Shown here piece by piece: positions 1,096-32,698 of a stretch of DNA of 64,000 bases; position 1 is the first letter of the stretch, and the number at the start of each line of letters is the position of its first letter. A program made the translations under genes and the position numbers. The notes below the pieces were generated by a model, which had not been told where the DNA came from, did no database searches, and was given only the letters and a program-made list of their open reading frames with translations. The DNA lies in NCBI GenBank assembly GCA_038087875.1, contig CM075999.1:3844001-3908000 (forward strand), in the 5' to 3' direction. Origin of the DNA: Malacoraja senta. Taxonomy: Eukaryota.

Positions 1096-3864
1096 GTAAA
1101 CGATATCCCTTGTATAGAGGTCCGTTAAAACAGCTCTATGTTCCAGGGTAAATGCTAAAGTCATCATTGGTTTCCAACGTGATAAATTTCAAAATCACTC
1201 TAAAGGAAATGAAAAAATAAGAATTAATGTAGGTTGAATGTTAGAACAAAATGAATATTTTTGAAACTCTTCTCGGTTGGTAAAATAATTGATTAAAGGA
1301 TCTTTGCCTCAAGGCAGTGTTCTAGTTTTCAGGTTTCAAACTCCATTTCATTGATACCTGGAGCAGCTGCCTCCAACAACCGTGCATGGTACGGATGTGC
1401 ATCCATCAATGCTCAATGTGGGACTCTGGGGAGCATCATTAATCAGAAATATACATTATTAAATATACATTATCATGGGTCTGCAGTCACATTTATCTAA
1501 ATAGAAGTCGTTCTGTGGAACAGAAATATTTTCCACAAATTTATTTGACAATTCAAGAAAGCCTGCTGAATTCATCGCAGCAAAACACAAATGTGCTGGA
1601 GGACCTCAGCAGGTCAGGCAGCATCGATGGTGGGAATGTGAGAGCCAGTAGCTACAACAGGCCAGAAGGCACCATATTTCAGCTACATGGAGTAAACATA
1701 GAAACCACTAGGTCTATTTGAAAAGAGATCATTGGAGTTAGGTAATTACAATTTCTATCCACTGGTTTCCTTGTTGTCACTTGTACAGAGATAGTGTTGG
1801 ATGGTTTTATGCAAATTAAAATTATAGGTTATATTATAGACTCTAGTCACTTAAACATTGGCAAATGGAAAACAACTGTATTAAAAAATCAATGAGTTCT
1901 GGCCGAGTTCTGAAATGCTTTTTTTTAAATTAGCAAAGTATTTCACAAATGGGCCAAACACCAGGTTGTTATAACATTACACAAGACACTGTGGGGCTGC
2001 AGTAAAAATAAATCCCTACAAAGAGTTTGAATAGTGCTTTTGTAAATGAAACATGAATTTCCCAGCTTGGCTGTTATCATCATCAGTTACCAGCTTCACT
2101 GTTATCAACCTTTCTCTATTCAACAGGTCCTTGTTGATATTTGAACTCGTCTAAGTGCTTGGAATTTCAATGAGGTAAATAATGTCCTATTCCTCCCCTT
2201 GTTAATTCAAGGCTACACATCCACTCAGAAAATGTAATTTTGTTCTCCGGCTGTAGATATTCAACAAAGTCATGAGACTGATCAAAAAGCTCAGATCAAC
2301 TTGTCCTTCTGAAGAGATGTTGATTAATACATGGTTAGTGTTCCTCCATCTGCAGGCTGTGAGCAATTCTCACAAAATGCTTCCTTCAAGTACCAAGTCT
2401 TCTAGCCCATTAAAACTTTAACATTCACGGTCTGTAAAAGGCATTTTCCACAACTGGAGGAGTAAAGTAATAAATGTTAGATCAGATGCAAATCTTGCGT
2501 TCCAGTATCTTGTCTCTGAATCCATGCTGCAACATCAAGGATACAGTGGTATATGGCAGACAAACTGCTACTGTAAATATTTCTCTCATGTCAAAGTCAT
2601 ACATCAGAGAAACAGGTCTTTGAGCCCAACAAACCCATTCCATCACGCCCAGTAACATCAATCCCATTTTATTCTGCCCACATTCCCATAAACTCCGTCT
2701 CAAGAAGGGTCCCGACCCGAAACGTCACCTGCCCCTTTTCTCCAGAGATGCTGCCTGACCTGCTGAGTTACTTCAGCTTTTTGTGTCTTTTCTTCCCATG
2801 AACTCACCTAGATTCAACCATTTACTTACACAGTGGTGGCAGTGACCAATAAACCGAAAACTTGAGCATTTTCATAGAACGTAGGAGGAAACAGGAGCAC
2901 CTGAAGGAAATTATAGCGTCACAGGGCGAACATGCAAATTCCACGCAGACAGAGCCAGGAGTGAGAATCGAACCTGGGCCTCTGGAGCTGAGAGGCAGCA
3001 GCTCTGATGGTGATGCCACTGTGCTGTACACTAAGGATTGAAAGCTTATATTGAATCTAATAAAAACACAGACACCGTTGTCTTGATTTGTGCCCCAGAG
3101 GTTTTATTGTATAGTCAACAACAGTAAATGAGGAAGTAGGTAAACACTAGATGACTGATCTAATAAAACATTTTAGATGGCAAGTATATTCATTTTCAGT
3201 TAGGACTGCAGCGTTTTCATCAATTTACTCTGCCTCCTTCCTGGTATTGTCACAGAATTTGTGGAAGAGTTTTGAAGAAATACATTTTGGTTTAAATCAC
3301 AAAGCATAAATAATTTAAGCATTTGTCCAATAATTTCATTAACTGTGGTTGAAGGAACATTGATCTTGAAGGAACGGTGAACAGTTTACCTGTCTTTGAA
3401 AATCAACACTAAATCAATGAACGTTGGAGGTTAAGGGCAGACCTGACAGAAATATATAAAATTATGAGGGGCAGAAATAGAGTAGTCAGACAGAACCTTA
3501 TCCCAAGGTGGAAATATTAAAGACTAGAGGGCACAGCTTTAAGATGGAAGGGGAGAAGTTTAAAGGCGATGAGCGGGGCAGTGAGTGGTGAGTTCCTGCA
3601 ACACGCTGCTAGGAGTGGTGGTGGCAGGTTTCAGTCGCATTTAAGAGGCTTTTGGATAGACACATGGAGTTGCATGGAATGGAGGAATATTGATCACGTG
3701 CAGGCAGAGATTAATTTATCTTGTTATCATGTTTGGCACCAACATTGTGGGCCAGAAGGTCTGTACTGTTCCATGTCCTATGGTCCAGTGAGATTGAATG
3801 TGAGGTTATTTACATCCAGAACCATTTGATGTTTGTGTAGAGGACCGACATTGATGACTCTTCA

Positions 3865-3877
3865 GTTAATGATTAGA
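3865..3877 (+). promoter_or_regulatory. HNF1-like site in the fabp10 proximal promoter
   Basis: GTTAATGATTAGA matches 11/13 of GTTAATNATTAAC and lies ~125 bp upstream of the ATG of a liver-type gene. Confidence 0.55.
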
Positions 3878-4000
3878 TGTGAACCTTCAAACCAATTCTG
3901 CAGTCAGGTTATCAACCAACCCGACTGTTCCTGTGCTCAGTGTTAGGTATATGTGCCGCTCCTCTGTGTGAGACGTTCCCCAGACCAGACTGCAGCAAGG

Positions 4001-7000
4001 ATGGCATTCACCGGGACATGGCAGGTCTACGCTCAGGAGAACATTGAGAACTTCATGCGGGCTCTCTGTAAGTGATAGCGACTCCCTGGGGAATCCAGGA
4101 AATGCAGCAGGAGTTTCAGTTGTTGGTTAGTTCACTGTTTGGGATTGTGGCATAGCGCTTATACCCTGCATGGCACAAACTCCAGAATGGTGTTCAAGAG
4201 TTCATCAAGACTTGTGGAGTTCTTGGTGAACTCAAGAACTCAACTGTTTAGGGGGGGGGGGGGACTGCAGATGCTGGTTTACACCAAAGATAGTCACAAA
4301 ATGCTGGAGAAACTCAGCGGGACAGGCTGGAGAGAAGGAATAGGTGACATTTCGGGTCGAGACCTTTCTTCAAACCTCAAGATCTCGACTGTCTAGTTGG
4401 AGCTAGAACACCGGGTGAAGATCAAGCTGTCCGTGACCAACGACTTCAAGAACAGCTTCTTCTCAGCAACCAACGTCTCGTCAACACTGCACAACACTAA
4501 CCTCAGCAACTATGGTCAGATTACCTAAGTCCTTAGTGCAAGAAAAGCCCCAGTGTCTTTAGTTGCATTACGGACTTCAGTTTTGCACTGTTATCGTTAC
4601 CTAGCATCACTGTTAATAATTTATTTGCATTATTAATTGTTATATATTTATCTGTGTGTTATTGAGTTTACGGACCTGTAACGCTGCAGCAAGTAAGAAT
4701 TTCATTGTTCCGTTGTCAGTACATATAACATTGAAATACTCTTGAATCTTGAACCAAGATTTAGACTCAATGAGTGATATATTTCCAAGTCAGTGTGGCA
4801 TGTGGCGTGCACCTGCTGTCCTGGTACCTAGCAGAAGTCATGGGTTTGAGAATGGATAGGTGACGATTCGGGTCGGGACCCTACTGGCCAGCCTTTGTCC
4901 TGTCCCCACCTCTCTTTTCCAACTTTCTCCCCCCACTGTGTTAGTCTGAAGAAGGGTCCTGACCTGAAACGTTGCTTGTCCATTCCCTCCACAGATGCTG
5001 CCCGACCCGCTGTTCCTCCAGCATTTTGTGTTTTGCTCAATAATGTTTCAGAATACTTTTTGAGTTCAGATAATTTGATAGTTCCAATATCCAGATAGAT
5101 AATTGTCAGGAATCATTTACAGCTATCGGCATTCATTAATATAGGGATAGGGCTTGTCCTTCCCTCTTTTAGAGTTAGCAAGGAGAAAATATTTAGAAAG
5201 GAGATGAGGAGGAATATTATTTAATCAGAGGGTGGTGAATCAGTGGAATTCACTGCCACATGGCTGAAGAGGTATTGGGTTATTGTTATTGGGTATTTTT
5301 AAAGTGGAGAATCACAGATTTTTGATTAGTAAGGGTATCAAAGATTATGGGGATGAAGGCAGCAGAATGGCTTTGAGAGAGAAAGATAGATCAGCCATGA
5401 TTGAATGGCGGAGGAGACTTGATGGACCGAATCAGATTCAGATTCAGATTCAGAAAACTTTATTGTCTGTCGGAACAGAAAATCTTCTTTGGCGTGGCTC
5501 AACATACAAACAGGACAATGTACTGATAAGCAGTCATACAACACAGATTTCTGCGAGCACACACCGTGTGTATAGATCTTAAAAGCAAGTATAAGGATTA
5601 AAAACTGTAAAAATAGACAAGATGAAAGTTGTGGATACGTGTAAAGTGACAGTGCGTCAGGGTTAATTTGTCCATTGTTCATTTTTTATTTAAGCTGTTT
5701 ATGGCAATGGGTATGAATTAGTTTTTGTGGATGTTTTTCTTAGATAGGGGGATTTTATATCGGCGGCCTGATGGCAGAAGTTGGAAGGACTTGTGCAGGG
5801 GGTGGGTGGGAACCTGTGTAATGAGGTTGGCTTTCCTTTTAACTGCCTGGGTGTGAAGTACTGATAATTGAATGGCCTAATTGAATGGCCTAATTCTGCT
5901 CCTATGACATAAACTGATGACAAGACGGGCTGGTCATACATTCCCAGCTCAGGACGTGTGCAGTGTTCCTGGCACTTGCTGCCAAGTGGATTTGGGAGTA
6001 GATGTTGAAGAAGGCTTGGTGGATAGTGCAGTGCGGTTTGTAGATGGTCTGTATGATCATAGAGTCATACACAAAGAGCCTGGCCCTTCGGCCCAACTCG
6101 TCCGTGCTGACCAAGTGCCAATTGCGCATTTTGAGGAGAAGACGAAGGGGATTGATGAAGGTCGGCATTGAAGGTAGTGAGGGAGTGCAGTCATGGTTAG
6201 CTGTTGGTGGACAGTGGATACGTCTAAACAATCACCATCACTGCCTCACGCCTTATCTTAATTCTCAAACATTACACACACAAATCTATTGCTTTGTGAA
6301 TGCCTAACAAAACAATGGTCTATGTGTAGGAATGAACTGCAGATGCCGGCTTACATCGAAGACAGACACAAAATGCTAGAGTAACTCAGCGGGTCAGGCA
6401 GCATCGCTGGAGAAAATGAATAGGTGACGCTTTGGGTCAAGACCCTGATTCAGGGGAGAGGGGAACTAGAGATGTGAAACGGTTCAGAACAAATCAGAGC
6501 TGGCTAAGGAAAGGTGGAGTCCACACTGGTCCATTGACCAGGGCCAAGATCTGGCATCACCTGAACCATGAATTTTACCTGACCCGGACCGATTTAAAAG
6601 TCTCCCCTCAGCAACACCCTGCAAACTTCAATCCCTGTGCTTAATGTTCAAGGTACAATTGTAAAGATGATATTGCACTCCAGTTACAAGTGTGTGACTT
6701 GTATAATTGCACAGCGCTTCCAGAAGATGTAATAAAGATTGGGAAAGACATCAAGCCAGTCATTGAAATCAAACAAACCGGAGACAACTTTGTCATCACG
6801 ACCAAAACTCCCCGTCAGTCGGTGACCAATGAATTCACCATCGGGAAAGAAGCCGATATCACCAGCATGGATGGCAAAAAGATGAAGGTAATTTAATCTG
6901 ATGCCTAGTTGTTCTATCATTGTATAATCATGTATTGCCTCAATCATGTATCGTCTTTCCGCTGACTGCTTAGCATGCAACAAAAGCTTTTCACTGTACC

Positions 7001-8623
7001 TCGGTACATGTGACAATAAACTAAACTCAAAATGACTGTTGACACAGACCAAGTCACGGTACATCAAGCATGTTTGTAAATGTTGGGCGAGTCACTGCTT
7101 TCTTCAACAGCTCATCCATCTGCAAACCCGAACCTTGCCTGCCAGTCATGGGGCTCTTTCATTCTGCATATATATATATATATACATACACACGAGACCA
7201 AGTGGGACCCGTTGCGCCCCGTCCCCCAACGCGGCGGGGGTTGGGCGCGGCGTCGGCGCTCACCTCGGAGACATGCACCCCCCCCCCCCCCGGAGCCAAT
7301 CACCCCCCAGAAGGAAAATTGTGGAATTTATGGAGGCAATTAATCGTCCCCGCGTTGAGGGGGGATGGATCCAGAATGGAGGGCAGGAAATGTTGCACAC
7401 ATTTACAATGATCTTTTCTTCTGCACAGTGCATGGTTCAGATGGAGGATGGGAAGCTAATCTGCAAGTTAAAGAACTTCCTGCATGTACAGGAGGTGCAG
7501 GGATCCGAAATGATTGAAGTAAGTTCATGGAATTGTAGACCAGGGACATGATGGCCCAGATGGAGATCACTGAGTCCAAGTCCATGCCAGATCATGAGCT
7601 TCCTCTTCAAACTCTGCACATTGTACAGCTTTCAGCAAACATCGGTCAATGCCTAAACCTCAGGAGAGATATTGTCATGGAATGATGCAGTACAGAAACA
7701 GGCCCTTCAGCCCACCAAGTCCGTGCTGACCATATACACCGATTCCATGTTCATCTTGTTGTATCCTCCCCATATTCCCACCATCTCCCTCCAACCCACT
7801 GGGAACAGGCTACCACCGCCAACTAAACCAGAGTCCCGCACATGTTTGGGACAAGGCAGGGTGCCGGAGCACCCGGATGGGACAGGGATAGGGGAATAAG
7901 AGGATTAAATTTGAAATATAGGACATGGGGATGGAGAGGGTGAGCATGCGGAGGTGGGGAATGGAGCAGGGTGCCTGGTGGGGTGGGAGATGGTGGGGGA
8001 CATTTAGACACGTCAGAATGGTGGGTGGGGAGAGGGGGGGTGGCAATAAAGCCACCCACACAACGGACACCCCAGCCACTACTCTGAGCACCCACTCTGT
8101 CCATCAATGCGCGTTGGAATGCAAGGACCCTTTGTTCACCAGCACTAAGACGTCGAGGTACCAAAGGCTCCCAGCTCTTCTTCTTATCGAGTCCACATCA
8201 CAAGATGAGAAATTGTTCAGCCAGAGCTGAACACACTTCTCGACATCTGCATACAATGGCTTCTTGTGCGTGGTGGTGGAAAGATTGGTGGAAACAGGGC
8301 CGCGATCGGCGTGAACGCTCTTTCCTTGACCCCTACTCCCACTTGATTGGGGTCATTGCTTCTCAGGGCATTAATACATGAGGCCACACAGCAGGCTGGA
8401 TTTTTCCTCACTGCATCACCTGATATTGTGATCTCGCCAGCTCCCACCCTCCCCACTCACTCCCACCCTCTCACTCTCACCCTCCCCCACTCACTCTGTC
8501 CTGCTTTGACTTCAGATTGATGACGTTACCACTCGTTCCGACTCATTTCAGCTCCTACATTTTTTTTTACAGAAACTTACAGCAGGAACTGCCACCATGA
8601 CCAGGAAAAGTCGTCGAATCTAA
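4001..8623 (+). CDS. fabp10: Liver basic fatty-acid-binding protein (Lb-FABP/FABP10), 126 aa; exons 4001-4067, 6715-6887, 7429-7518, 8573-8623
   Basis: Spliced protein: [126 protein letters not shown]. All introns are GT-AG. Exon sizes 67/173/90/51 fit FABP gene structure. AATAAA at 8649-8654. Confidence 0.95.
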
Positions 8624-8775
8624 ACACACCCCGCTGGTCCTGTATTGAAATAAAAGGATTTCAATCCTGCTATTCGTGTGTATATTTATACATATTTATG
8701 CATATATATCTATCATGTTTATATTTTGGTTATGGTAGTTTCACAAGACGTTGGTGAGGCCACATTTGGAGTATT

Positions 8776-9256: not shown

Positions 9257-10221
9257 TGTAGTATTGTGCTCAGAATTAGTCAGCCTACTGTAGGACAGAT
9301 GCCATTAGGCTGGAAAGGGTGTAGAGAAGATTTACAAGGATGTTGCCAGGACCCATGGGCCTGAACTATAGGGAGAACTTGGGCAGCCTAGGGCCTTATT
9401 CCTTGGAGCGCACGAGGCTAAGGGGTGATCTTACAGAATATTTTACCAAGGGTAAGGGAATCAAGAACTAGCGTTCATAGGTTTAAAGTGAAAGGGGCAA
9501 GATTGGTTAGGACCTTGAGGGGCAAATTGTTCACACACAGATGGTGGGTATATGGAAGGAGTCTAGGACATTGACAGAACTCAAAGTGCTGGAGGAACTC
9601 AGCAGGTCAGGCAGCATATGTGGAGGGAATGGAGAGGCAATGTTTTGTGTCGGGACTGAAGAAGAGTCCTGACCTGGAACATCATCTGTTAAGATTGCTC
9701 AGGATAGAGTCATAGATTCATAGAGTGATACAGTGTTGAAACAGGCCCTTCGGCTCAACTTGCCCACACCGGCCAATATGTCCCAGCTACACTAGTCCCA
9801 CCTGCCTGTGTTTGGTCCATATCCTTCCAAACCTGTCCTATCCATGTATCGCAGCATTCCATGGATTCCAGTGTCTGTAGGCATCTGGAGTCCAGTATAT
9901 TGATGTAGAGGTATGGTTCTTGGGGTCTGGCTGTTTCAGGCTGGGGTTGACTCACTCTGGGATAGCCATCCCAACTGTAAAGAGGGCTACGCATTGTGGA
10001 CACCATTCTGTTACCCAGACAGAAGCCATTGTGCTGAAACACTTTGCCACCAATCTAGACTTTGGACCATAACTCAGTGAAGCCAAACATGAATAAAAGA
10101 AATAGGTTATTTCATGCAACTTTTTTACTGAAGATAATGGAAATATTTCCCCCAAAAGTTCAGCATTTCTCTCTCTGATTCACCGTGAGTTAATTTCTGA
10201 GGAAGGAGGGTCTGGTATTTT

Positions 10222-10911
10222 CTACCTCTTGGACTTTGTATCGTTTTCTACTGCGGGGAAACAAGAAGTTCCACACTGAATAATGGAATATTTTACAACC
10301 AAGAAGCAAAGCTCAGACACATTCAACAAGATGCACAATGCTGAGATCACCAACATAAACACAGTGCAGATAGTTTTCTCGGTGGGCCTGGAAATGAAGC
10401 AGTCTACAGTGTTGGGGCAGGGGTATTCACTGCACTTCACAAGCCGCACCATCTGGTACCCCTCGTAGATCCAGTAAAACAAGTACATAAAGGTCGCTTC
10501 AAATAGCATCTTGAAGACAAGACTGACCAGGTAAGTCCGTAGAAGAGGGGCATCGATCTTTATTTTCTGTTTAGCTGCATTCAGGTGAAAGATTTTGATG
10601 TTCTTCTTGCTTTTTTTCCTTTGGGAGACGTGCATGCCGATGAGAAAGGAGGGGACGGACACAAAGAGTAGCTGGAAGACCCACAGCCGGATGTGGGAGA
10701 TGGGGAAGAAGCGGTCGTAGCAGACGTTCCTGCAGCCGGGCTGTTGGGTGTTGCAGACAAAATCGCTCTGCTCGTCTCCCCACACCGTCTCGGCCGCCAC
10801 CACCAAGACCATCACGCGGAAAACGAAAATCACCGAGAGCCACACCTTGCCCAGCGACGTGGAGTACTTGTTCATCTCGCCAAGCAACTCTTGAAGGGTG
10901 TCCCAATCCAT
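10222..10911 (-). CDS. Beta-connexin (GJB2/GJB6/GJB1-like), copy A, 229 aa, single coding exon
   Basis: Motifs [33 protein letters not shown] and [20 protein letters not shown]; six extracellular Cys; four TM segments. Splice acceptor tttattcctag lies 11 nt before the ATG. Confidence 0.95.
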
Positions 10912-12889
10912 CTTGGATTACCCTAGGAATAAACAGCACGAGTTATGTTGTGTGCAGGAAGGAACTCCAGTTGCTGGTTGAAACCGAAGATAGACACAAA
11001 AACCTGGAGTAAACTCAGCGGGACAGGCAGCGTCTCTGGAGAGAAGGAATGGGTGACGCTTTGGGTCTGAACAAGGGTCTCGACCCAAAACGTCACCCAT
11101 CAGTTATGTTGTTACAGCTGAGAATCAATGTTAACGTAATAAATTATTATTAGTAGTAAGAAACCAAGGTGAATGAATGAATGTATGAATGAATAAATGA
11201 ATGAATACTTTATTGTCACACGCCCTGAAGAAGGGTCTCGACCCAAAACGGCACATATTCCTTCTCTCCGGAGATGCTTCCTGTCCCGCTTACACGGCAT
11301 TTTGTGTCTATCCAAGGACTCTCCAGTTTCATCGCTTTTGGTGGTAGCTCAAAAAACAGCGGCATAAATCTAGTGCTTAAAAGTTCATCAAAGCCAGTGA
11401 ATATATCTACTCAATTTTGGAAACTATTAAAGATGCAAAGTGGATCAAAGAAACTGCAGATGCAAGAAGGCTGAAATAAACATATGAAATGATGGAGTTG
11501 TCTGCAGATCAGGTAGCAACTGTGGGAAATGAAACAGAGTTAACATTTCAGGTCAAAGTTCTTTCATCAGAAGGTATGGATATAGCGAGCACCAGCTCAT
11601 CCCCTCAGAGTCCTTGAGTCTGTTCCGACATTAAAAGGGATCATTCCTAATAGTCGCACTTATTCACTTGCTCTAAATGCTTTAGAGACATAAGGAACTG
11701 CAGATGCAAATCACAAAGTGCTGGGTGAACTCGGCGGGTCAGGCAGCATCTGTGGAGAGAATGGGCAGACGACGTTTCGGGTTGTGTCCACTCTTCACTC
11801 ACTTCCTTCCAGAGAGGCTGTCTAACCTTCTTAGTTCACCCAGCATCGTCTTTGTCTTCCCCCCTATTCCTTTGATTATCATATGATCCAAATCTCTGCC
11901 AATCTCCCCCTTGAATCTTGTCAACGACATTGATCACCCTGGAGTCAGAGAGTTGTGAAGATTCATAGTCCTCTGATTTATGCAGTTTCTGCCCATCTCT
12001 GTACCTCGTGACCCTGGTAATGAGAAGTATTCCATTTGTGGCCAAATAGTAAAAACAATTCAGAACATTCCATTGGAGGAACAAGTAAGTACAGATGCTG
12101 GAATATTGAGTGAAACACAAAGTGCTGGAAGAACTCGGCAGGTCAGGCAGCGGCTTCAATGAAGACCTTGCTCTCAATATTCCAGCTCCACATTTTGTTT
12201 CTGTTCCTATAATTGTCAAATTCACACACGATCAGACACAGAGTTTAGTTCAAATGTAAACCGTTTATTGCTGCGTGAAAACATGATTGGTGTAGTGGGG
12301 GCAATGTTGTAAATCAAGAGAGTCCATGCACTCCCACTCCCCCAACAGGCAAGCCAAGTGCCAGGCAATCTCACCCAGAGGACCAGCTCCCTGTGCCAAC
12401 ACCCTCAGGACAGGACCAAGCACGGGCTGAGGACAGTAGACCGCACACTCCACAGGAACATTGACCATGCGTGGAATCTGTCTCCCCGTGATCATGCCCA
12501 CCACCAAACGTTGTCCTTGTTTGGTGGCTCATCCGTCAGTATCATTACCATTTATTGGGGCGTAAGGCAATGCACAGGAGCAGCCTGGCACAGTTGGAGA
12601 CGGGGGTCACATCACTTCCCAATGCCACCTCCAACATGTCTGCAGCAATCTCACCATCAGAAGCCCAAGCAAACAGAGGAGCTGTGCTTGGGGGATTGCA
12701 TGCCAATGTGTACCTGGATTACCAGATGTTGGTGTGTCACTTGCCAGCTGTGCAGATGGCTGGGCTCAGCGTGCAAGAACATTGACAATAGCATCACAGG
12801 GTGTATAATGAACTGGAGTTTGCCGTATACTAAAGCTACTGGGTTCTGAATGAGGTTGATAGATCTTTCATAACAAGCTTCACTCGTTT

Positions 12890-13187
12890 CGTTTAGTGTG
12901 ATATACAGTGTAGAAACAAGCCATTCGGCCCACTAAGTCCACGCCGACCAGCTATCCTCGCACACTAACACTATCCTACACACACTAGGGACAATTTACA
13001 ATTTTACCAAGCCAATTAGCCTACAAACCTGTACGTCTTTGGAGTGTGGGAGGAAACCGGAGCACCCGGAGAAAACCCACGAGGTCACAGGGAGAATGTA
13101 CAAACGCCACACAGAGAGCACCCGTAATCAGGATCGAACCTGGGTCTCTGTGAGGCAGCAGCTCTGCCCGCTGCACCGCCGTGCCGC
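12890..13187 (-). mobile_element. tRNA-derived V-SINE (HE1-like)
   Basis: Pol III A/B boxes plus the V-domain core (gtgggttttctccgggtgctccggtttcctcccac) on the - strand. Confidence 0.8.
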
Positions 13188-13852
13188 CCCACCTATACAT
13201 GAACTGGAACACTTCTACAAACATAAGCTGTATCCTAGTCTGATGGGTCATATGTTACAATCAAACTGCACAGTTCAACAATATTCAGTGGGGTGCATAC
13301 TGCTAAAATCACTAATATAGATAGAGTAATAGTTATGTTCTGATGGACAGGAAATAAACACATCAATGTTATTCGGAAAAGGACATTTGCTGTTCCCTAC
13401 TCCAATAACTTTCACGTGTCATTTTGTTCTCTACAATATTTGATCTAATAATTTATCTAATAATTCTCTTAGGTCCTAACATTAATCATCTATTCAATAC
13501 CTAGAATTTAAAGTATAGAAGTTCCAATCTGCATCAACTTCCCTATCAGATGTACCTATTAGTTACGCATAAATAATTTATCTTATAATCCTCTTGCTGA
13601 ATATTTTTCATGGGTGGTGACATTCCTGAAGGTTTGCTGAAGGTCACAACGATGCAATAATACCTTCCACTGAAGTGTCAAATATGGGTGCAACATATAA
13701 CTAAAAATAAAGAGAACACAAGTGAGGAAGGGTTTGACAATTCTCCTCTCCCATCACCCTGGTAACCACTGTAGCAGTCATACAAAGATTGTGTTGGTTG
13801 TGAGCTGTGTGTGTGCATTGAATGATCATAACTGTGGCACCCATTAGTGGAC

Positions 13853-14136
13853 AGCACGGTGGCGCAGCGGTAGAGTTGCTGCCTCACAGCGCCAGAAACA
13901 TGGGTTCGATCCTGACAACAGGTGCTGTCTGTACAGAGTTTATACATTCTCCCTGTGACCTGCGTGGGTTTTCTCCGGGTGCTCCGGTTACCTCCCGAAC
14001 TCCAAAGACCTTCAGATTTGTAGGTTAATTGGCTTTGGTAAAATTGTAAATTGTCCCTAGTGTGTAGGATAGTGTTGGTGTGCGGGGATCGCTGGACGAA
14101 GGACCTATTGATGCGCTGCAATTCTAAAGTCTAAAT
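13853..14136 (+). mobile_element. tRNA-derived V-SINE (HE1-like)
   Basis: A-box gtggcgcagcgg, B-box ggttcgatcc and the V core. Further copies near 2830, 15865, 22960, 24055, 26945, 55490, 55705, 57341 and 59305. Confidence 0.85.
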
Positions 14137-14155
14137 TCATAAAGTGTGCGTTTTT

Positions 14156-14932
14156 TTAACAGACAGAGGAGTGTTCTGACTGGCTGTCTTGTTCAATATC
14201 CATGTCCGCCGTTGTCTTGTCAGCGGAGGTGATAGCCGCCGTTAATCTTCTGTCTTTTTCGTTGTTTTCTGCTGCAGAAAACATAGTTTGCTTCCAATGC
14301 ATAAAACAATATCTAATGATCAAAAAGCAGAGCTCGACCACATTCAACAAGATGCACAATGCCGAAATCACCAGCATGAAAATGGTAAAAATAGTTTTCT
14401 CGGTGGGCCTGGAAATGAAGCAGTCTACAGTGTTGGGGCAGGGGTATTCACTGCACTTCACAAGCCGCACCATCTGGTACCCCTCGTAGATCCAGTAAAA
14501 CAAGTACATAAAGCTGGCTTCAAATAGCATCTTGAAGACAAGACTGACCAGGTAAGTCCGTAGAAGAGGGGTGTCGATTTTTATTTTCAGTTTAGCTGCA
14601 TTCAGGTGAAAGATTTTGATGTTCTTCTTGCTTTTTTTCCTTTGGGAGACGTGCATGCCGATGAGTAATGAGGGGACGGACACAAAGAGTAGCTGGAAGA
14701 CCCACAGCCGGATGTGGGAGATGGGGAAGAAGCGGTCGTAGCAGACGTTCCTGCAGCCGGGCTGTTGGGTGTTGCAGACAAAATCGCTCTGCTCGTCTCC
14801 CCACACCGTCTCGGCCGCCACCACCAAGACCAACACGCGGAAAATGAAAATCACCGAGAGCCACACCTTGCCCAGCGACGTGGAGTACTTGTTGACCCCA
14901 TTTAGCAGAGAATGGAGGATATACCATCCCAT
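14156..14932 (-). CDS. Beta-connexin (GJB2/GJB6/GJB1-like), copy B, 258 aa, single coding exon
   Basis: Same connexin motifs as copy A, with a longer C-tail. Homologous acceptor tttaatcctag lies 11 nt before the ATG. Confidence 0.95.
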
Positions 14933-17379
14933 TGTTGTTCACTCTAGGATTAAACAGCATCAGTTACTTCACTGATCAAGAAGCGTCTTTACAAATCATT
15001 ACTAAAATCTTGAAGATGCGTGCCTTTCCCATGTACCTGACAACAATGGCTTCTACCTATGTTTCTACGTCAGAGAGTCGTACAGCACAAAAACAAGTCC
15101 TGTGGACCAACTCATCCATGTTGACCAAGATGGTACCCTTGTAACCTATAACCACCTGCCCACGTTTGGCCCATATCCCTCTGACCTATGCTTGTATCTG
15201 ACCTAATGCCTTGTACATATTTTAATTCCTCAACTACCTCTGTGGCAGCTGTTCCATACACACACTATCCTCTGTGTGAAGTGCCTGCTCCTCAAGTCTG
15301 CTTTAAATCTTTCCTCTCTCAACGAACCTTTCTTGCCCATTTTCACGAAAATAAGACTGTCTTTGCTTCTGATTGCAAAAACATGAAATATGTTGTTCTT
15401 TGCCACTCGATTGCTCTGGAAAGTGATGTTTTTTTACTGGAAACGAATCTCTAGGCAATCCTAACTTAGCCTTTCATCATTCCCCTTGTGAGGAGGCCTT
15501 GCATTGTACATGCGTGCATGGGTGCAGGGTACTCTTAAGGTCATAAGTGATAGGAGCAGTATTAGGCCATTCGGCCCATCAAGTCTGTACCACCATTCAA
15601 TCATGGCTGATCTATCTCTCCCTCCTAACACCATTCTCCTGCCTTCTCCCCATAACCCCTGACACCCATACTAATCATGAATCTATCTATCTCTGCTTTA
15701 AAGATATCCAATGACTTGGCCTCCACACCCTTCTGTGGCAAAGAATCCCACAGATTCACCAGACCCACCAGATTTGTGCAATCAGATACAGTACAAGACA
15801 CTAACACTTCTGTGGGATGCCACCATTACATTCAAGAGACAAGTAAAAAGACACTTGCAATGTAGTGGTACAGCTGTCAGAGCCGCTGCCTCACAATGCC
15901 AGGGTCCCGGGTACGTTGCTGACCTCAGGTGCTGTCTGTGCGGAGTTTGTATGTTCTCCCTGTGACCACGTGGGTTTCCTCAGAGTGCTCCAGTTTCCTC
16001 CCACATCAGGAAGACGTGCAGGTTTGTAGGTTGATCGACCTCTGTCAATTGCCCCTGTCGTCTATGGAGTGGATGAGAAAATAGGATAATATCAAACTAA
16101 TATGAACGTGTAATCAATGGTTGGCAGGGACTCAGTGGGCCGAAGGGCCTGATTCCATGCTGTATCTCTAAACAAGATGTTTGATCTTGCAGCATTCAGC
16201 CTGATGCTTCCTACTTCAAAGAATGACTCATGGTGATAAACCTACATCAATGAAATGATTAAGAAGGAACTGCTGGAAAAATCGAAGGTAGACAAAAATG
16301 CTGGAGAAACTCAGCAGGGTGAGGCAGCATCTATGGAGCGAAGGAATGGGTGACGTTTCCGGTCGAGACCCTTCTTCAGAGGGTCTGCACCCTGTGTCTG
16401 CACCCAATATACAAACAATTGCTATTGAAGACACTTTACACTTTTGGAAGCTGTTGCTACCAGGTGTTAAAACCTCATAATGCAACAATCGCAGTTGATC
16501 ATTTTTGTCACGGACGTGGATATGTTTTGAGTTACTCCAGCACACTGTGCCTTTTCTTGTAAACCAGCATCTGCAATTCCTTTTGTCTATATTTATATTT
16601 TACGGTTTCACTGGGAAATCTCCTCAAGGTATACCTAGTTCTCCTCCTCTCTCTGACTGGAGTTGTGTGATGCCCTCTCTCACTGCCCCCCCTGTGTGAT
16701 TCCTGCTGCACTCTTGCTCCTTTGTTCTCTCGTCAGGGTTTGTCTGGCTCCCACCTCTCTTCCATCTTTCTTCACCCTCGTACAATCAGTCCCAAGACGA
16801 GTTCCAACCTGAAACATCACCTATCCATTTGTTCCAGGGATGCTGGACCCACTAAGTTACCTGATATTGAACTCAATGGGTTTTTAACAGCGACATGATA
16901 ATTTAACGGGCAATAATACTCATTTTTTATCCCAAAGTTTCTACCCATATAATGGAAAGATTAGAAAAAGAGAAATTAACAAATACCTAAAAGCAAAAAC
17001 AAATTAAATAAACTCCAAAAAAGGCAGATGACCACTAACAATCATATATAGCAAATATTTAAGCATCTTCCATTTTTTTATATGGTAAAAATATAAGAAA
17101 TAGGAATGTCAGGAGAGCATTTGATGTTTTGAGCTTGCTCTTTGTTCATTGAGATCATGTTTCACCCACCTGAGCACCATTTTCCTGTATTATCCTAATT
17201 AATATTCCATTAATATTCAAAGGTGTCAAGTGCAGGAAAAAGCCAGTAATCCACTGCCCGGGGATTTAGATCTGACTCAGCAGGGTCGGACCCCAGTGCC
17301 TCACTGCCTTGTAGAGACAGGGAACTGCAGATGTTGGTTGTGGACAATAAAGTTCATTGCAGGTCAATTTAACTGAGTT

Positions 17380-17790
17380 TGATGAAGGATCCCGACGTAA
17401 AACATCACCTATCCATGTTCTCCAGAGATGCTACCTGACCCGCTAAGTTATTCCAGCACTCTGAAACGTCACCTATCCATGTTCTCCACATATGCTGCCT
17501 GATCTGCTGAGTTACTCCAGCACTCTGTGAAACGTCACCTATCCACGTTCTCCACATATGCTGCCTGATCTGCTGAGTTACTCCAGCACTCTGTGAAATG
17601 TCACCTATCCATGTTCCCCACAGATGCTGCCTGACCCGCTGAGTTACTCCAGCACTCTGTGAAACGTCACCTATCCATGTTCTCCACATATGCTGCCTGA
17701 TCTGCTGAGTTACTCCAGCACTCTGTGAAACGTCACCTATCCATGTTCTCCACAGATACTGCCTGACCCGTTGAGTTACCATAACACTCT
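17380..17790 (+). repeat. Minisatellite, ~6 x 66 bp, derived from the Penelope terminal repeat
   Basis: gaaa(c/t)gtcacctatcc recurs at 17463, 17529, 17595, 17661 and 17727, a period of 66. Confidence 0.9.
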
Positions 17791-19214
17791 AATTCTTCCT
17801 TCACTGCCTTCCCCACTCACTGGAGACCCAGCACCACATCTGCCTCCCCACTCACCAGTGTTCTGGTCCCTGCACTCCCTTTACACTCACTGTGACCCAG
17901 ACATCCAATAGTCCAGAAACTCTCCGAGTTCGGCACCACCAGTCCCAAGTCTATCTTCCCTAAACCCCACAGTTTTGGGCTAAACATCTTTCAACATTTT
18001 GTGCTGGAGTAACTCAGCGGGTCAGGCAGCATCTCTTGAGGGATTGGGTAGGCGACTTTTCACGATGTTTCTTCTAAAGAGTGCCGATCCAAAATGTCCA
18101 TTCCTTCACAGATGCTGCCTGACCCACTTAATTCCTCGAGCACTCAGCATTGTACTCAACATTCCAGCATCTACAGTTCCTCGTGTCTCCATCTTTCAAC
18201 ATTTTCTTTCACAATCTCCAAGCCCTTGCTTTGATTGATGTCACAAAGGGCTCTGTTTCTCAGCTGTCACTGTTGCCCCAAGCTGTAAAACCATTCTACA
18301 CTAATTCCTATATCACGCATCCTCAAAAATGATTCATTGCCCTCCTATGCTGACTCATGTTCTTCTGATGTCATGAAATGGTGGAATTCTTTGAATCCCT
18401 CAGTCATTCCTTTCTCCTATATTCATTTTTTTTAAACAAGCAAACCTGCGGTCTCATTTTGTGAAGACATCTCCGTCTCATGAAACACAGTAGTGTGTTG
18501 GCTTCCTCCCAAGGGGTCTATGTCACTACTCGTGCTCCAATTACTCCTTCTCCTCATTGAGATCATTTACCATATACCATTAAATGTGAGACAGGTCGCC
18601 TCCAGATTCAGGGACAGTTTCTTCCCAGCTGTCATCAGGCAACTCAGCCATCCTATCACCAACTAGACAGTGGTCCTGACCTACCATCTACCTCATTGGA
18701 GAACCTCGAACTATATATTCAATCCGACTTTATCTTGCACTAAACGTTATTCCATTTATCCTGTATCTGTACACGGTGAGACGGTTTGATTGTAATCATG
18801 TATAGCCTTTTCACTAACTGGATAGCACACACCAAAAAATTGTCATTGTTCCTCAGTACAGGTGACAATAATAAACTCAGCTGTACTAGCTTCTCACTAA
18901 AATAATATTCTCCTTGATTCCTTATAGAAAATAAGTAGGCCATTCGGCCCTTTGAGCCAGCACCACCATTCAATGTGATCATGGCTGATCATCCACAATC
19001 AGTACCCCATTCCTGCCTTCTCTCCATATCCCTTGATTCCGCTAGCCCTAAGAGCTCTATCTAACTCTCTTTTGAATGCATCCAGTGAATCGGCCTCCAC
19101 TGCCTTCTGAGGCAGAGATTCACAACTTTCTGGATCTTTGTGAACACTTCGGATCCACTTTCCCAATGACTATGCTTTCAGAGTCATCAATACCTCAATC
19201 AGTCTTTTATTTAA

Positions 19215-19485
19215 AGAGAGACACAAATCGCTGGAGTGACTCCGGGTCAGGCAGCATCTCTGGAGGAAAAGGATAGGTGATGTTTTGGGTTGAGACCTTT
19301 CTTCAGTCTGAAAGTAGAGGGGGGAGAGTGCAGAGGCGGAGGCGAAAAAATGGTCAAAGAAGGGTTCCGACCCGAAACATCACCTATCCTTTTTCTCCAG
19401 AGATGCTGCCTGACCCACTAAGTAACTCCAGTACTTTGTGTCTATCTTTGGTATAAACCAGCACCTGTAGTTCTTGTTTCTACAT
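19215..19485. mobile_element. Inverted pair of Penelope-like terminal repeats (MITE-like)
   Basis: Arms at ~19215-19310 and ~19355-19485 are reverse complements around a purine-rich spacer. Confidence 0.7.
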
Positions 19486-22400
19486 TTAGTCTTTTATCTA
19501 GACTGATTGTTCAATGTTTTCCAATAATTATAACATCTCAGTTATGGCATCTTGTGATTTGTTTTAAAAAGATGATTAAAGGTTAAAAATGACATTGGAG
19601 AAATATCTCCTTCTGTAATCAGACGAGTATTTGAGTACACAAAGGCCGGTCCACCCCTTGAGAGTCAAGTGTCAAATATGTCCTGAAACGGAACAATGAA
19701 ATGCTTGCCTTTTCCATCACTTATTAAAATCATGGCTGAGATAATATCATAACCTCAACTCTACATTCCCATCTGTTTGAATAAACTTTCACTCCCTTAC
19801 TTGTCAAGAATGTGTTTGCCGCTGTCTTAAAAAATATTCAAAGCCTCTATTTGCAACATTCTTTAAGAGAAAGAGATCCAAGACTCACAACACTCTCTAG
19901 TGAAAGGGCAATCCTTGTTCTTGATTCTTTCACAAGAAGCCATGTCTGCTCCACAATCATCCTGTCGTGATCGTCAGGATTTTAAACGTTTCAATTCCAC
20001 TCTCACTCTTCAAATCCACAGTGGATACAAACTCATACTGTCAAGTCTTTCCTCATTAGACAACCCACCCATCCCATACAGTCATCCCCTGACTGTCTGA
20101 AGACGGGTCTCAACCCGAAACATCACCTATTCCTTTTCTTCAGAGATGCGGTCTGACCCGCTGAGTTACTCCAGCATTTTGTGTACCTGACTGCAGGTAA
20201 TTCTTCTCCACCAATCAATTAACACCTTATATATTTTTAACTGTAAGCATCGGAAATATGATCTTGGCTTACCTTGGATAAAACGAGGAATTATTTTTCG
20301 TATCGCATAAAGCATTAGGTGAGCTCTGACGGGAATCTCCTAGGCTGACATCCAGCCTAGACAGCTTTGCCCATTGTCTGATAACCAGGAGCAGAATCAG
20401 ATGGAAATAAACAACTGAAACATAATTAAATAAATGAAGAATGTGGATGGACCTGCTGCAGAGAATGACATTCAAAACATCTATAATACGTCCCGTATGG
20501 ATTATATAAAAGCAACCAAGCACGTATTGACCGGGGTTAAGGAAAGAGCGTTCACGTCGCGGCCCTGTGTCCACCAATCTTTCCACCACCACGCACAAGA
20601 AGCGCAGACGGCCAAGATGCCATTGTAGGAAGTGTGTTCAGCTCTGGCTGAACAATTTCTAATCTTGTGAAAAAGAGTTAAAGAAGGAACTGCAGATGCT
20701 GGAAAAGATATACCTTGTGTACCTTCTAATCTTGTGATGTGGACTCGATAAGAAGAAGACTTATTGACTTAGTTGTAGCTAGCTTAGAAGGGCTGAACAT
20801 TGTTTTAGTGAAGAATGGTGGGTGGGGTTGGTGTCATGAGATATTTCTTGACACCTTTTAGGAGTGGCATAGAATCACAAACTTGTTGATTGGAGAGTGT
20901 TTTTAATTCATTTACAATTTACAGGTATCAATGGCAAATGGGACTAGACCAGTCAACTTGTTTGGCTTGGACAAGGTGGGCCAAAGGTCCTGTTTCCGTG
21001 CTGTACAGCTCTATAATTCCATGAGTCTAAAGGCAAAGCAGGTATTAATGGTTCATCCACATTGGCCTTGAGAAGAGATGGTGCACTGCCTTCATGAAAG
21101 CAGTAGCTCTTTTGGTAAAAGTGCTCCTGAATGCAGTCTGGGAGGGAGTTCCAGGATTTAGAAGGATACAGGATTGGTGTTGTATTTCCAGGTCAGGATG
21201 GTTGCAACTTGTTGTCCCATGCACCTGCTGTCCTCTGCCCTTTGTGATGGTTGAGGTGGTGTGGGAGATAAGGAACTGGAGTGTCCATCTCTTGTACATC
21301 AATGGTGGCGGACGATAACGTTGATGTGTGTTGGTCAAGTGGGTTGCTCTGTCCCGGGTGGCATCTAGTTGCTGTGATCAGTTGTTGGTGCTGCGCTCAT
21401 CCAGGCAAGTGGACAACATTCCATCACACTTAACACATGGCAATGTTAATGATGCAAGACATTGGGGTGTTAGAAAAAGAGTCATTCGCTGCAACATATC
21501 GGCCTCGGACTTGCTCGTAGTCACAGTATTTATATGGCAGATCCAGTCCAGATACTATCAACTACCCCCACAAAGGTAAGAGATTTGGTAATGATAACGC
21601 CACTAAATGTCAAGGCTAGGTGGTTCCATTCACTCCTGTTGGAGATGATCAGTTCGGTTGATTAGTGCGGGTGTCAGAGGTTATGGGGAGAAGGCAGAAG
21701 AATGGGGTTAGGAGGGAGAGATAGATCAGCCATGATTGAATGGCGGAGTAGACTTAATGGGCCGAATGGCCTAATTCTGCTCCTATCATATATGAGCTTA
21801 TGATATTTTAGATCACCTGACACCTTTGTGATGCAAATATTACACGCCACCTTTCATGTCCTCCCACATGTGGTTAAAGTGCACATTGTCAGATTTTAAT
21901 AAAAGCAAATTTTAGACATTTTGGTTTCACCATGGTGGCACAATTTGCAGAGGGGTCGGACTTCCTGATTGTGTTATTTGTCGCCATCTGCTGTGGCTAC
22001 TGCACATCAGTGACAGTGGGAAATAATGTTGACCGGTGTCAAATGGGCTGCTTCGTTCCGTTGGCACCCAGCGTCTTGAGACTTGCTGGTGCTGCAATCA
22101 TCTTTACTATTTTGGAACGTACTGTAGTTTATTGCAAAGAAATTATATTCTAGTAAACTTTAATTCCACGTACACACGGCTGAGACAGTCTAGTTTTTTG
22201 TTGTAAGGGTTTTCAGAAACCGGCGGGAAAGTGCAGCGTAGGCACAAATCAAAATCAATCATGAAGCTGCAGAAGGTACAGTATGTGGAGCTAAGTTGTC
22301 CATTGTTACTCTTATCCAGGGAGACAAAAATGCTGGAGACACTCAGCGGGTGAGGCAGCATCTATGGAGCGAAGGAAATAGGCGACGTCTCGGGTCGAGA

Positions 22401-23054
22401 CCAAGGACTATTTTTTTCAGAAATAAATAAGTGCACAAATAATTGAAGTGCAAAATATACAAGCTAAATCCCACTAAAAGCAGCCGTGAGCGGATAATGT
22501 GTGCATAGTGCAAGAATACAAATAATAATACATCACTGAGATCAGCACACGTGATGCTCCAAATTGCTCCGATGCCATTCAAATATGCACTCAAGTAAGA
22601 CCTGTACAACTTGTTAAACAAGAAAATAGCACAGGTTACATGTGCGTAATCAAAGTACTTCTAAAATATTTTTAAATACTTCTAAAATAAAAATATTTTC
22701 TCATCTGCACAACAGAAAATAATTTGTCATCGTCAACTTTCCGCAGCTTCAGATATGGAGGCTTTTCCATTTTGGCAGAGATGCTTTTTGTAAATACTGT
22801 ACTAATAACCAGGGCAAAGAATCTGGATGTAAAATAACTAAGAGTGGAAAAACCTGACCCAAACATCACCGAATAAATCAGCTTCCACAGAACACGTGAC
22901 TGCGTGAAGTATTGGAGGTATTCGTGGAATGAATGCTTTTGTAAGGCATCATTTGATTTAAAGATACAGCATTGAAAAAGGCCCTTCTACCCACCGAGTC
23001 CACGCTGACCATCGATCACCCGTTCACACCAGTTTTATGTTATCCCACTTTCTC

Positions 23055-32400: not shown

Positions 32401-32698
32401 TTGAAAAGTGGCCCTTTTTGATTTTTGCCCTGGATTTGTCTGCCTGCCACTTTTACTTTTCACCTTGCTACCTATTGCTTCCGCCCGCATTTTACACCCC
32501 TCTGTTTCTCTGCTCACCCATTTAAGAACCCCACTACCTCTTATTCTGTTTATTATTGTTTTCTTCTTTCCCCCCTACATGTTGGGTCTGAGTGCTTTCC
32601 TTCTCTGCCTCCTGCCTCACACACTGTCTAATAGCTTTCTCTATTTGAGTCCCTCCCCCCAACCATTCTAGTTTAAAGTCTCCCCAGTAGCCTTTGCA
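29481..32698 (-). mobile_element. CR1 (HER1-like) LINE: end of ORF1, complete APE endonuclease + RT ORF2 with one frameshift, and 3' tail
   Basis: ORFs 30289-32517 ([35 protein letters not shown]) and 29565-30485 (RT C-terminus). ORF1 end AKATGETLN* at ~32669-32698. Tail ctatgtat at ~29481-29495. Confidence 0.95.

Follow-up and report, generated by a model that had tools for sequence, protein, structure and literature searches.

How two neighbouring connexin genes can be nearly identical along their central 500 bp and strongly diverged at both ends is the question raised by this locus of the skate Malacoraja senta. The window analyzed, a stretch of 64,000 nucleotides from contig CM075999.1, holds both genes among its listed open reading frames:

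14156..14932, minus strand: L, the long paralogue gjb11.2, an intact single-exon connexin coding sequence of 258 aa
10222..10911, minus strand: S, the short paralogue gjb11.1, an intact single-exon connexin coding sequence of 229 aa

In a profile search both proteins matched the Pfam Connexin family (L, E 1e-82; S, E 4e-81), scoring 272.6 and 277.3 bits for PF00029, where the curated cut-off is 31.3, and covering positions 1-224 of the 225-position profile. It can be read from the translations that L and S share the E1 cysteines C53, C60 and C64 (C-x6-C-x3-C) and carry three cysteines inside a 13-residue motif in E2. The nearest solved structures are those of beta connexins, namely GJB2 chains (E ~1e-90 over residues 1-214) and GJB1 (3e-88), the alpha and delta connexin structures being far weaker matches; domain limits were set by alignment to human Cx26. 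The L protein is 97% identical to the 258-aa protein P0001 of Amblyraja radiata, and the S protein is 96% identical to that of the 229-aa A. radiata gene at L001 15220-15909. The A. radiata entries in Table S6 of PMC7914757 (chr27 923307-923998 and 928526-929162) correspond base for base to L001 10001 and 15220, as does the Pristis entry (CM019876 2120602) to L004 10001. Judged by these sequence matches, the window pair are the genes that Mikalsen et al. (2021) named gjb11.2 (L) and gjb11.1 (S), members of a connexin group restricted, as far as known, to cartilaginous fishes (PMC7914757).

The gjb11 locus sits between an FABP-like gene and SRSF10/PNRC2. The order L, S and FABP-like gene was found in Amblyraja, Heterodontus, Carcharodon and Mobula, the order L and S in Heptranchias, Stegostoma, Chiloscyllium and Mustelus, and the two-gene L-S order is common to nine species. 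Heterodontus, Hypanus, Mobula, Carcharodon, Chiloscyllium and Mustelus entered the comparison through gene order and proteins only.

Comparison of the two genes within the window divides each of them into a core and its ends, as follows:

14391..14893, minus strand: homogenised core of L, codons 14-180 (TM1, E1, TM2, cytoplasmic loop, TM3 and E2), differing from the S core at 10 of 503 bp
10370..10872, minus strand: homogenised core of S, codons 14-180, 10 differences in 503 bp from the L core
14894..14932, minus strand: L head, codons 1-13, with G2, Y4, H7 and S8; part of the channel as the N-terminal pore helix, at no time converted, with 54% identity to the S head
10873..10911, minus strand: S head, codons 1-13, with D2, D4, E8 and E12; never converted, orthologous between species
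14156..14390, minus strand: TM4 and long C-tail of L, outside the tract in skates, dS against S 1.8 to saturated
10222..10369, minus strand: TM4 and short C-tail of S, outside the tract in skates, grouping with Amblyraja S at 100/100
14933..14966, minus strand: splice acceptor with 5'UTR ahead of the L start codon, a segment particular to L and kept in sharks, rays and sawfish (80-nt upstream sequences compared)
10912..10945, minus strand: splice acceptor with 5'UTR ahead of the S start codon, a segment particular to S (upstream sequences compared)

The two cores lie in register, with a start-to-start spacing of 4021, and occupy nucleotides 40-542 of the coding sequence in both minus-strand reading frames. 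An initial annotation of this DNA had estimated about 10 differences between them and perfect runs of about 120 and 160 bp; the count is exactly 10 (4 synonymous, 6 non-synonymous), and the longest perfect runs measure 123 and 163 bp. The 163-bp run is far beyond chance, as a run of at least this length appeared in 0 of 100,000 shuffles of the 78 L/S differences in a GENECONV-type test. The homogenisation extends to synonymous sites, as had been claimed: among codons with a conserved amino acid, third positions differ at 4/153 sites in the core vs 12/30 outside it (Fisher p 5e-8). Outside the core, the divergence that had been ascribed to codons 2-13 and the C-tails is borne out by identities of 54% in codons 1-13, 76% in codons 181-208 and 52% in codons 209-229. 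The flanks, also described earlier as diverged, are indeed unalignable, save for about 35 bp around the splice acceptor ahead of each ATG.

The dS along the genes, which the initial annotation had proposed to examine, is strongly non-uniform. By the Nei-Gojobori method it is 0.038 in the core vs 1.8 or more, or saturated, outside it (codons 1-13 and 181-229 being saturated, >1.6), and with the ends saturated while core dS is 0.04, ends and core are of different age. A mosaic of this kind, in which a young-looking core is set between old ends, is demonstrated in the window skate, and the same arrangement recurs in the DNA of three further independent assemblies, those of Amblyraja, Heptranchias and Stegostoma. 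Core dS between paralogues of one species is lowest in Heptranchias (0.01), followed by the window skate (0.04), Stegostoma (0.06) and Amblyraja (0.07), and paralogue dS outside the core ranges from 0.5 to saturated. Between orthologues, core dS is 0.12-0.13 for skate-skate, 0.47-0.49 for shark-shark and 1.1-2.0 for skate-shark comparisons, and these between-species values are unchanged whether L/L, S/S or L/S pairs are compared.

The trees follow the same division, and the proposal that cores should group by species and ends by paralogue was upheld, with weak deep nodes in the case of the ends. In the tree of core DNA, L falls with S according to species (support 100/100 in Stegostoma, 100/100 in the skates and 90/95 for L and S of Amblyraja), and a clade of all L sequences is rejected at an AU (approximately unbiased) p of 8e-78. 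Conversion later than the separation of the two skates is regarded as demonstrated, although its AU test, in which the L cores of the window skate and Amblyraja were held together, is only borderline (p 0.054). A protein core tree of 19 sequences likewise follows orders, not paralogues: L and S of Heterodontus form a pair, Hypanus L falls with Mobula S, and the Orectolobiformes stand together. In the tree of the ends, the two skate L sequences come together at 98/97 and the two skate S sequences at 100/100, and a pairing of L with S of the window is rejected at an AU p of 1e-72. The deep L and S clades are not separated in this tree of 186 columns, in which forcing all L sequences into one group lowers the lnL by 5.9 (p 0.12), partly because the Heptranchias tract extends into TM4. 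The deep orthology of the ends rests, in consequence, on head site patterns, the fixed residues at position 2, tail length and synteny.

In the skate vs skate comparison, the core has 7 species-type sites to 1 of paralogue type, the head 0 to 17, and TM4 and tail 0 to 43; against Heptranchias, the head has 7 paralogue-type sites against 0-1 of species type. G2 is found in 10/10 L sequences and D2 in 7/7 S sequences, and it is by such markers that the orthology of the ends across lineages is demonstrated. Columns that are equal within each species yet different between species occur in TM2, the cytoplasmic loop, TM3, E2 and TM4. The docking loops themselves are variable at only 5/35 (E1) and 6/35 (E2) columns across 18 elasmobranch sequences and hardly different in the single-copy chimaera gene. 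Since they are near-invariant even there, conversion, which the initial annotation had credited with keeping both loops identical while the regulatory ends diversify, is not needed to explain their identity, and purifying selection alone would be sufficient. As regards composition, GC3 in skates falls from 0.88 over the core's first half to 0.51-0.55 in codons 181-229; the chimaera gene, though single-copy, shows a like gradient (0.78 vs 0.60), so the GC-rich core is no proof of GC-biased conversion.

From these observations we consider it very probable that the gene was duplicated before the shark-ray split and that the core, codons 14-180, has since undergone interlocus gene conversion recurrently. 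L and S would derive from one tandem duplication older than that split, and their central 500 bp would have been overwritten repeatedly between the copies by interlocus, non-allelic gene conversion, rather than by double crossover, a likely route being double-strand-break repair templated on the neighbouring copy 4 kb off in direct orientation. The outcome would be concerted evolution of the core inside each species, leaving outside the tract, and paralogue-specific throughout, the first 13 codons (the pore-lining N-terminal helix), TM4 or its distal part, and the C-tail. Two factors probably keep the boundaries in place: the diverged ends (about 54% and 76% identical) may be unable to support heteroduplex extension, and selection may favour two heads, S always with D2 and L always with G2, and two tails. 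The initial annotation had proposed an old duplication followed by recent conversion; the duplication and the homogenised core stand, but the conversion would not be merely recent, being recurrent and common to sharks and rays, with the 5' tract edge at codon 13/14 in 4/4 species on the difference maps.

Among the rival explanations the one that fares best, although we regard it as unlikely, is that cycles of unequal crossing-over, in which the array grows to three copies and returns, have homogenised the core instead of short-tract conversion. It draws on the sawfish (Pristis), whose reference assembly contains a single gjb11 gene. In this gene a head and 5' flank of L type are followed by a tail and 3' flank of S type, which is precisely what one product of unequal crossing-over within the core would look like; PMC7914757 likewise lists one gene only for Pristis. 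The head of this gene has a pS of 0.00 vs L, and its tail a dS of 0.30 vs S and 1.32 vs L. The corresponding regions of the window are:

15340..22956, minus strand: upstream region of L, with about a dozen conserved blocks in the same order as L004 2371-9270, the sawfish 5' flank
9936..10221, minus strand: 3'UTR and downstream segment of S, collinear with the sawfish 3' flank

With blastn, window 10945-9936 aligns to L004 9967-10956 at 77% identity, extending beyond the S stop codon, and the downstream blocks of sawfish L004 are collinear with window 10945-9936 and 8691-3427. The L-S intergenic DNA of the window gave no match to sawfish L004 beyond repeat-like hits and a connexin fragment. This arrangement points to a putative origin of the sawfish gene by unequal crossover in the shared core, and its L-head/S-tail junction, which speaks for gene conversion as well, implies that recombination does take place there. 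A trace of a third copy could likewise be seen in a decayed connexin fragment lying between L and S in both skates:

13250..13400, minus strand: decayed, frameshifted connexin fragment (E2-TM4, about codons 158-208), detected by tblastn at E 0.005-0.009 in two adjoining frames

The DNA of the window's fragment is 69-72% identical to shark and sawfish coding sequences over 135-145 bp. A single crossover, however, swaps one whole side of the array and could not make an internal 500 bp alike between ends and flanks that remain distinct. The L-S intergenic DNA is moreover in the same order in both skates, at about 90% identity, and carries no trace of turnover, and the two-gene order is constant throughout the nine species. 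A search for an S promoter or exon 1 gave no blocks conserved between skate and shark in the L-S intergenic DNA.

Far less credible is a recent independent duplication in each lineage with fast-diverging ends, which would make conversion superfluous and would account for cores that are near-identical inside each species. Core and ends with the dS contrast described above cannot be of the same age, the heads, splice-acceptor segments and tails are orthologous between sharks and rays, gene order is conserved, and the ends reject grouping by species. Contrasting dS values and orthologous ends together refute this explanation.

A shared core produced by assembly, as a collapsed or chimeric repeat, is very unlikely, given the same pattern in four independent assemblies. 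The cores differ at 10 sites, one of which, at codon 89, is paralogue-specific in Amblyraja too. Two sequencing runs of the window organism contained 0.80-0.98 of the sampled words, and for the S stretch the two runs, from two samples, contained 0.98 and 0.86, although the best-matching DNA run may be the window assembly's own sample. Probable RNA runs of related organisms contained 0.13-0.25 of the S-gene words, with no discrimination of L from S.

The idea with practically no likelihood left is that a nucleotide-level constraint, an overlapping frame or RNA structure, keeps the cores alike: both copies do have a 122-aa other-frame ORF over the GC-rich half of the core, but that frame is not conserved (open for 112 codons in the window species only, 64 in Amblyraja and 42-58 in others), and core synonymous sites are free between species (dS 0.47 among sharks, >1 for skate-shark), which refutes constraint and rejects the overlapping ORF as the cause of synonymous identity.

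If recurrent conversion of the core is accepted, the pair would show that gene conversion can act within a coding exon for hundreds of millions of years and yet spare both a 13-codon functional module and the tail, with clean bounds in four lineages. For gap-junction biology, L, S and the sawfish L-head/S-tail fusion may serve as three natural constructs with a near-identical pore scaffold and docking loops, contrasting in the N-terminal helix, the gating-polarity determinant in Cx26/Cx32. One could go further and speculate, on doubtful ground, that the homogenisation is itself selected: a single channel scaffold would bear two swappable modules (the D2/G2 head as voltage sensor, and the tail), L and S would co-assemble or dock as asymmetric, rectifying junctions, conversion would have kept the transmembrane, loop and docking surfaces in step for about 300 million years, and the fusion gene of the sawfish would amount to a module exchanged by nature. 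There is a warning for phylogenetics as well, since trees built from whole gjb11 genes would place the paralogues of a species together and give a false picture of recent duplication, which probably applies to other tandem connexins too.

The process invoked, gene conversion, is well known, and the gjb11 mosaic would be an unusually long-lived case of it. The fusion of neighbouring paralogues is familiar from haemoglobin Lepore and the red/green opsin hybrid genes, which are disease alleles. As read from one assembly, the sawfish gene would fit the Lepore-type pattern, its 5' part coming from the upstream paralogue, its 3' part from the downstream paralogue, and the DNA between the two being lost; unlike those hybrids, it is no disease allele but the only gjb11 gene in the reference assembly of a wild species.

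The paper in which gjb11.1 and gjb11.2 were named treats the same genes and gives their names and positions (PMC7914757); it makes no mention of conversion (0 occurrences), of mosaic structure or of a chimeric sawfish gene. Tandem pairs in long concerted evolution have been described, with mammalian pairs exceeding 100 My (PMC2720389; overview in PMC3966226). The gjb11 pair resembles them in that part of the sequence is nearer between paralogues than between orthologues, homogenisation reaches synonymous sites and the flanks reveal the true age, and it differs in spanning the shark-ray divergence, in having the same 5' boundary inside a coding exon in four lineages and in sparing a 13-codon functional module.

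Among connexins, a literature search for demonstrated gene conversion found nothing beyond the suggestion made for amniote GJB2/GJB6 (Cx26/Cx30), where it was put forward for unresolvable orthology (PMC6726660). Both cases concern adjoining beta-connexins, and GJB2 is the best structural homologue of the gjb11 proteins; the gjb11 pair, however, lies between an FABP-like gene and SRSF10/PNRC2 and not beside GJA3, and conversion has been tested in it, whereas in GJB2/GJB6 it is merely suspected. In Cx26 and Cx32 the first 12-13 residues lie in the pore, and the charge of residue 2 sets the polarity of voltage gating (PMC4276742). The unconverted gjb11 head comprises these same 12-13 residues, with D2 in S, as in Cx26, and a neutral residue at that position in L, as in Cx32, and by this analogy the two heads may differ in function, with S and L gating in opposite polarity.

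Two intact connexin genes, the long paralogue gjb11.2 (L) and the short paralogue gjb11.1 (S), lie co-oriented with 4021 bp between their start codons, and the 64 kb window has no other intact connexin:

14156-14932, minus strand: L, intact single-exon connexin ORF, 258 aa
10222-10911, minus strand: S, intact single-exon connexin ORF, 229 aa

The Pfam Connexin profile was matched full-length by both L (E 1e-82) and S (E 4e-81), human Cx26 is their closest solved relative (E about 1e-90) and the top database match of L is a 'gap junction beta-2 protein-like' of Amblyraja radiata (97%). The Amblyraja locus has the same L-then-S layout, and its record coordinates are those of the gjb11.2 and gjb11.1 entries in Table S6 of Mikalsen et al. 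2021 (PMC7914757), a paper that assigns gjb11 to the beta connexins, restricts it to cartilaginous fishes and does not mention gene conversion. Blocks at 3427-8691 that recur in the sawfish and in the chimaera correspond to a FABP-like (lipocalin-fold) gene downstream of S, on the opposite strand; SRSF10 and PNRC2 lie farther along the window, and MYOM3 lies past the FABP-like gene in Callorhinchus. This arrangement matches the human MYOM3-SRSF10-PNRC2 neighbourhood, which is not known to contain a connexin.

Elsewhere in the window, a tandem array of 66-bp period (17376-17788) has four to five units that are 92-95% alike and derives from the core of a dispersed SINE-like repeat with copies scattered throughout. 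At 29565-32517 (minus strand) long ORFs of 742 aa and 306 aa overlap; together they look like a LINE endonuclease and reverse-transcriptase protein, apparently split by a frameshift, and a second, broken copy of the LINE-like 3' part occupies 34973-35617.

L and S are in register from the ATG, and CDS nucleotides 40-542 (14391-14893 in L, 10370-10872 in S) form a shared core. The initial annotation had described by eye 503 bp with about 10 differences and perfect runs of about 120 and 160 bp, and this proved correct to the base: exactly 10 of the 503 positions differ (4 synonymous, 6 non-synonymous) and the longest runs are 163 and 123 bp, a run of at least 163 bp being reached in 0 of 100,000 shuffles. 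The strong divergence it reported for the head, C-tail and flanks was likewise recovered, with identity of 54% over codons 1-13, 76% over codons 181-208 and 52% over codons 209-229; beyond the coding sequence, alignment is limited to about 35 bp at the splice acceptor, and the remaining flanks share dispersed repeats only. dS, which it had proposed to follow along the genes, is far from uniform by the Nei-Gojobori method: 0.038 in the core, whereas the ends are saturated or reach at least 1.8 (synonymous third positions, core versus outside, Fisher p 5e-8).

Codon alignments were built from the window pair, the pairs of Amblyraja, Heptranchias and Stegostoma, and the single genes of Pristis and Callorhinchus.

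Core dS (codons 14-180)
Paralogues, window skate: 0.04
Paralogues, Amblyraja: 0.07
Paralogues, Heptranchias: 0.01
Paralogues, Stegostoma: 0.06
Between the two skates: 0.12-0.13
Between the two sharks: 0.47-0.49
Skate versus shark: 1.1-2.0

The between-species values are unchanged across L/L, S/S and L/S pairings. As anticipated for core and terminus trees, L and S pair by species in the core DNA tree (all-L clade rejected, AU p 8e-78), while in the tree of the ends (codons 1-13 and 181-229) skate L groups with L and S with S (grouping of the window's L and S rejected, p 1e-72). The core protein tree of 19 sequences groups by order and not by paralogue; Heterodontus L and S fall together and, within Myliobatiformes, Hypanus L groups with Mobula S. 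These patterns support gene conversion between L and S. Between the two skates, 7 core sites are shared within species versus 1 within paralogue (codon 89, phenylalanine in S and leucine in L), and the species-type to paralogue-type ratio is 0:17 in the head and 0:43 in TM4 plus tail. This indicates that conversion continued after the two skates split; the corresponding AU test is borderline (p 0.054).

GC3 of codons 14-95 (14646-14893 in L, 10625-10872 in S) is 0.88 in skates and lower in the other groups compared (chimaera 0.78, sawfish 0.72, sharks 0.65). The high skate value is compatible with GC-biased conversion; however, a matching gradient runs along the single-copy chimaera gene.

Sharks and rays both have long forms of 247-258 aa and short ones of 222-229 aa. 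L followed by S occurs in Heptranchias, Stegostoma, Chiloscyllium and Mustelus, and in Amblyraja, Heterodontus, Carcharodon and Mobula L is followed by S 3-10 kb downstream and then by the FABP-like gene on the opposite strand. All L proteins start with M-G-W and all S proteins with M-D-W, and the 35 nt preceding the ATG are also L-specific or S-specific (skates, Heptranchias, sawfish). These features, common to sharks and rays, place the duplication before the shark-ray split, which published time trees put on the order of 300 million years ago. The single Callorhinchus gene, with an L-like long tail, adjoins the FABP-like gene and MYOM3.

The L head with its 35 preceding nt (14894-14966, minus strand; likewise in Heptranchias, Stegostoma and sawfish) has a skate-shark pS of about 0.2 over roughly 8 synonymous sites, versus 0.6-0.7 for the core; this segment may be under nucleotide-level constraint, or the core may evolve faster than its surroundings, so few sites being insufficient to tell. 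The Heptranchias perlo short gene (14305-14988 of its locus) has an unbroken 227-aa ORF with a normal S-type tail. Its public model P0016 (226 aa, spanning 14305-16085) has an unrelated C-terminus in place of that tail, apparently because the end was modelled wrongly.

Cycles of unequal crossover may occur alongside conversion, as the sawfish gene and a decayed connexin fragment suggest. Pristis pectinata has one gjb11 gene (10001-10684 of its locus), with no other for 10 kb on each side. The head of this gene is L-type (pS 0.00 versus L) and its tail S-type (dS 0.30 versus S, 1.32 versus L); its 5' flank is collinear with DNA upstream of L (a dozen or so blocks, 22956-15340) and its 3' flank with DNA downstream of S (10945-9936, then 8691-3427), and the window's intergenic DNA finds no match in the sawfish locus except repeat-like hits and the connexin fragment described below. 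With L head and flank joined to S tail and flank and the intergenic DNA absent, the assembled gene is the chimera expected from unequal crossover between the two homogenised cores, although it could also reflect collapse of its assembly. The decayed fragment lies about 750-900 bp 3' of the L stop codon:

13250-13400, minus strand: decayed, frameshifted connexin fragment by connexin similarity, E2 to TM4, about codons 158-208

It is present in Amblyraja too, the L-S interval of the two sharks yielded no counterpart, and it may be a relic of a third copy. Unequal crossover cycles cannot, however, homogenise an internal segment with both ends left in place.

A shared core created by misassembly is very unlikely, since the two cores differ at 10 sites, the mosaic recurs in four assemblies and two sequencing runs from two samples contain 0.86-0.98 of the S-gene words. 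Nucleotide-level constraint is ruled out as the keeper of alike cores, because the core diverges freely at synonymous sites between species and an alternative reading frame over its GC-rich half is not conserved:

10571-10939, minus strand: 122-aa ORF in the other frame
14592-14960, minus strand: 122-aa ORF in the other frame

That frame is open over 122 aa in the window species only and most likely arises incidentally from base composition. The saturated synonymous divergence of the ends, together with their orthology, rules out independent recent duplications in each lineage.

Difference maps place the 5' edge of the tract at codon 13/14 in 4/4 species and the 3' edge near codon 180 in skates and Stegostoma and at about codons 196-209 in Heptranchias. 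By alignment to Cx26 and its known topology, the tract spans TM1, E1, TM2, the cytoplasmic loop, TM3 and E2, leaving outside the N-terminal helix, TM4 and the C-tail. The first dozen residues of Cx26 and Cx32 are located in the pore, and the charge of residue 2 sets transjunctional voltage gating polarity (PMC4276742). Given D2 in 7/7 S sequences (with D4, E8 and E12 in skate S) and G2 in 10/10 L sequences, L and S may have opposite gating polarities, and a junction of L with S may be asymmetric. The docking loops vary little across 18 elasmobranch sequences (variable columns: E1 5/35, E2 6/35) and are nearly unchanged in the single-copy chimaera gene, so that conversion, which the initial annotation had cast as the keeper of their identity, is not needed for it. 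Columns that change jointly in the two paralogues fall within TM2, the cytoplasmic loop, TM3, E2 and TM4.

Overall, the observation is confirmed and the earlier proposal of an old duplication followed by recent conversion is supported. It can be extended to recurrent concerted evolution among elasmobranchs, with a 5' boundary that stays in place and a natural fusion gene in the sawfish. No published description of gjb11 core conversion was found in the searched literature; already known are the gjb11 genes themselves and gene conversion between tandem duplicates as a type of event.
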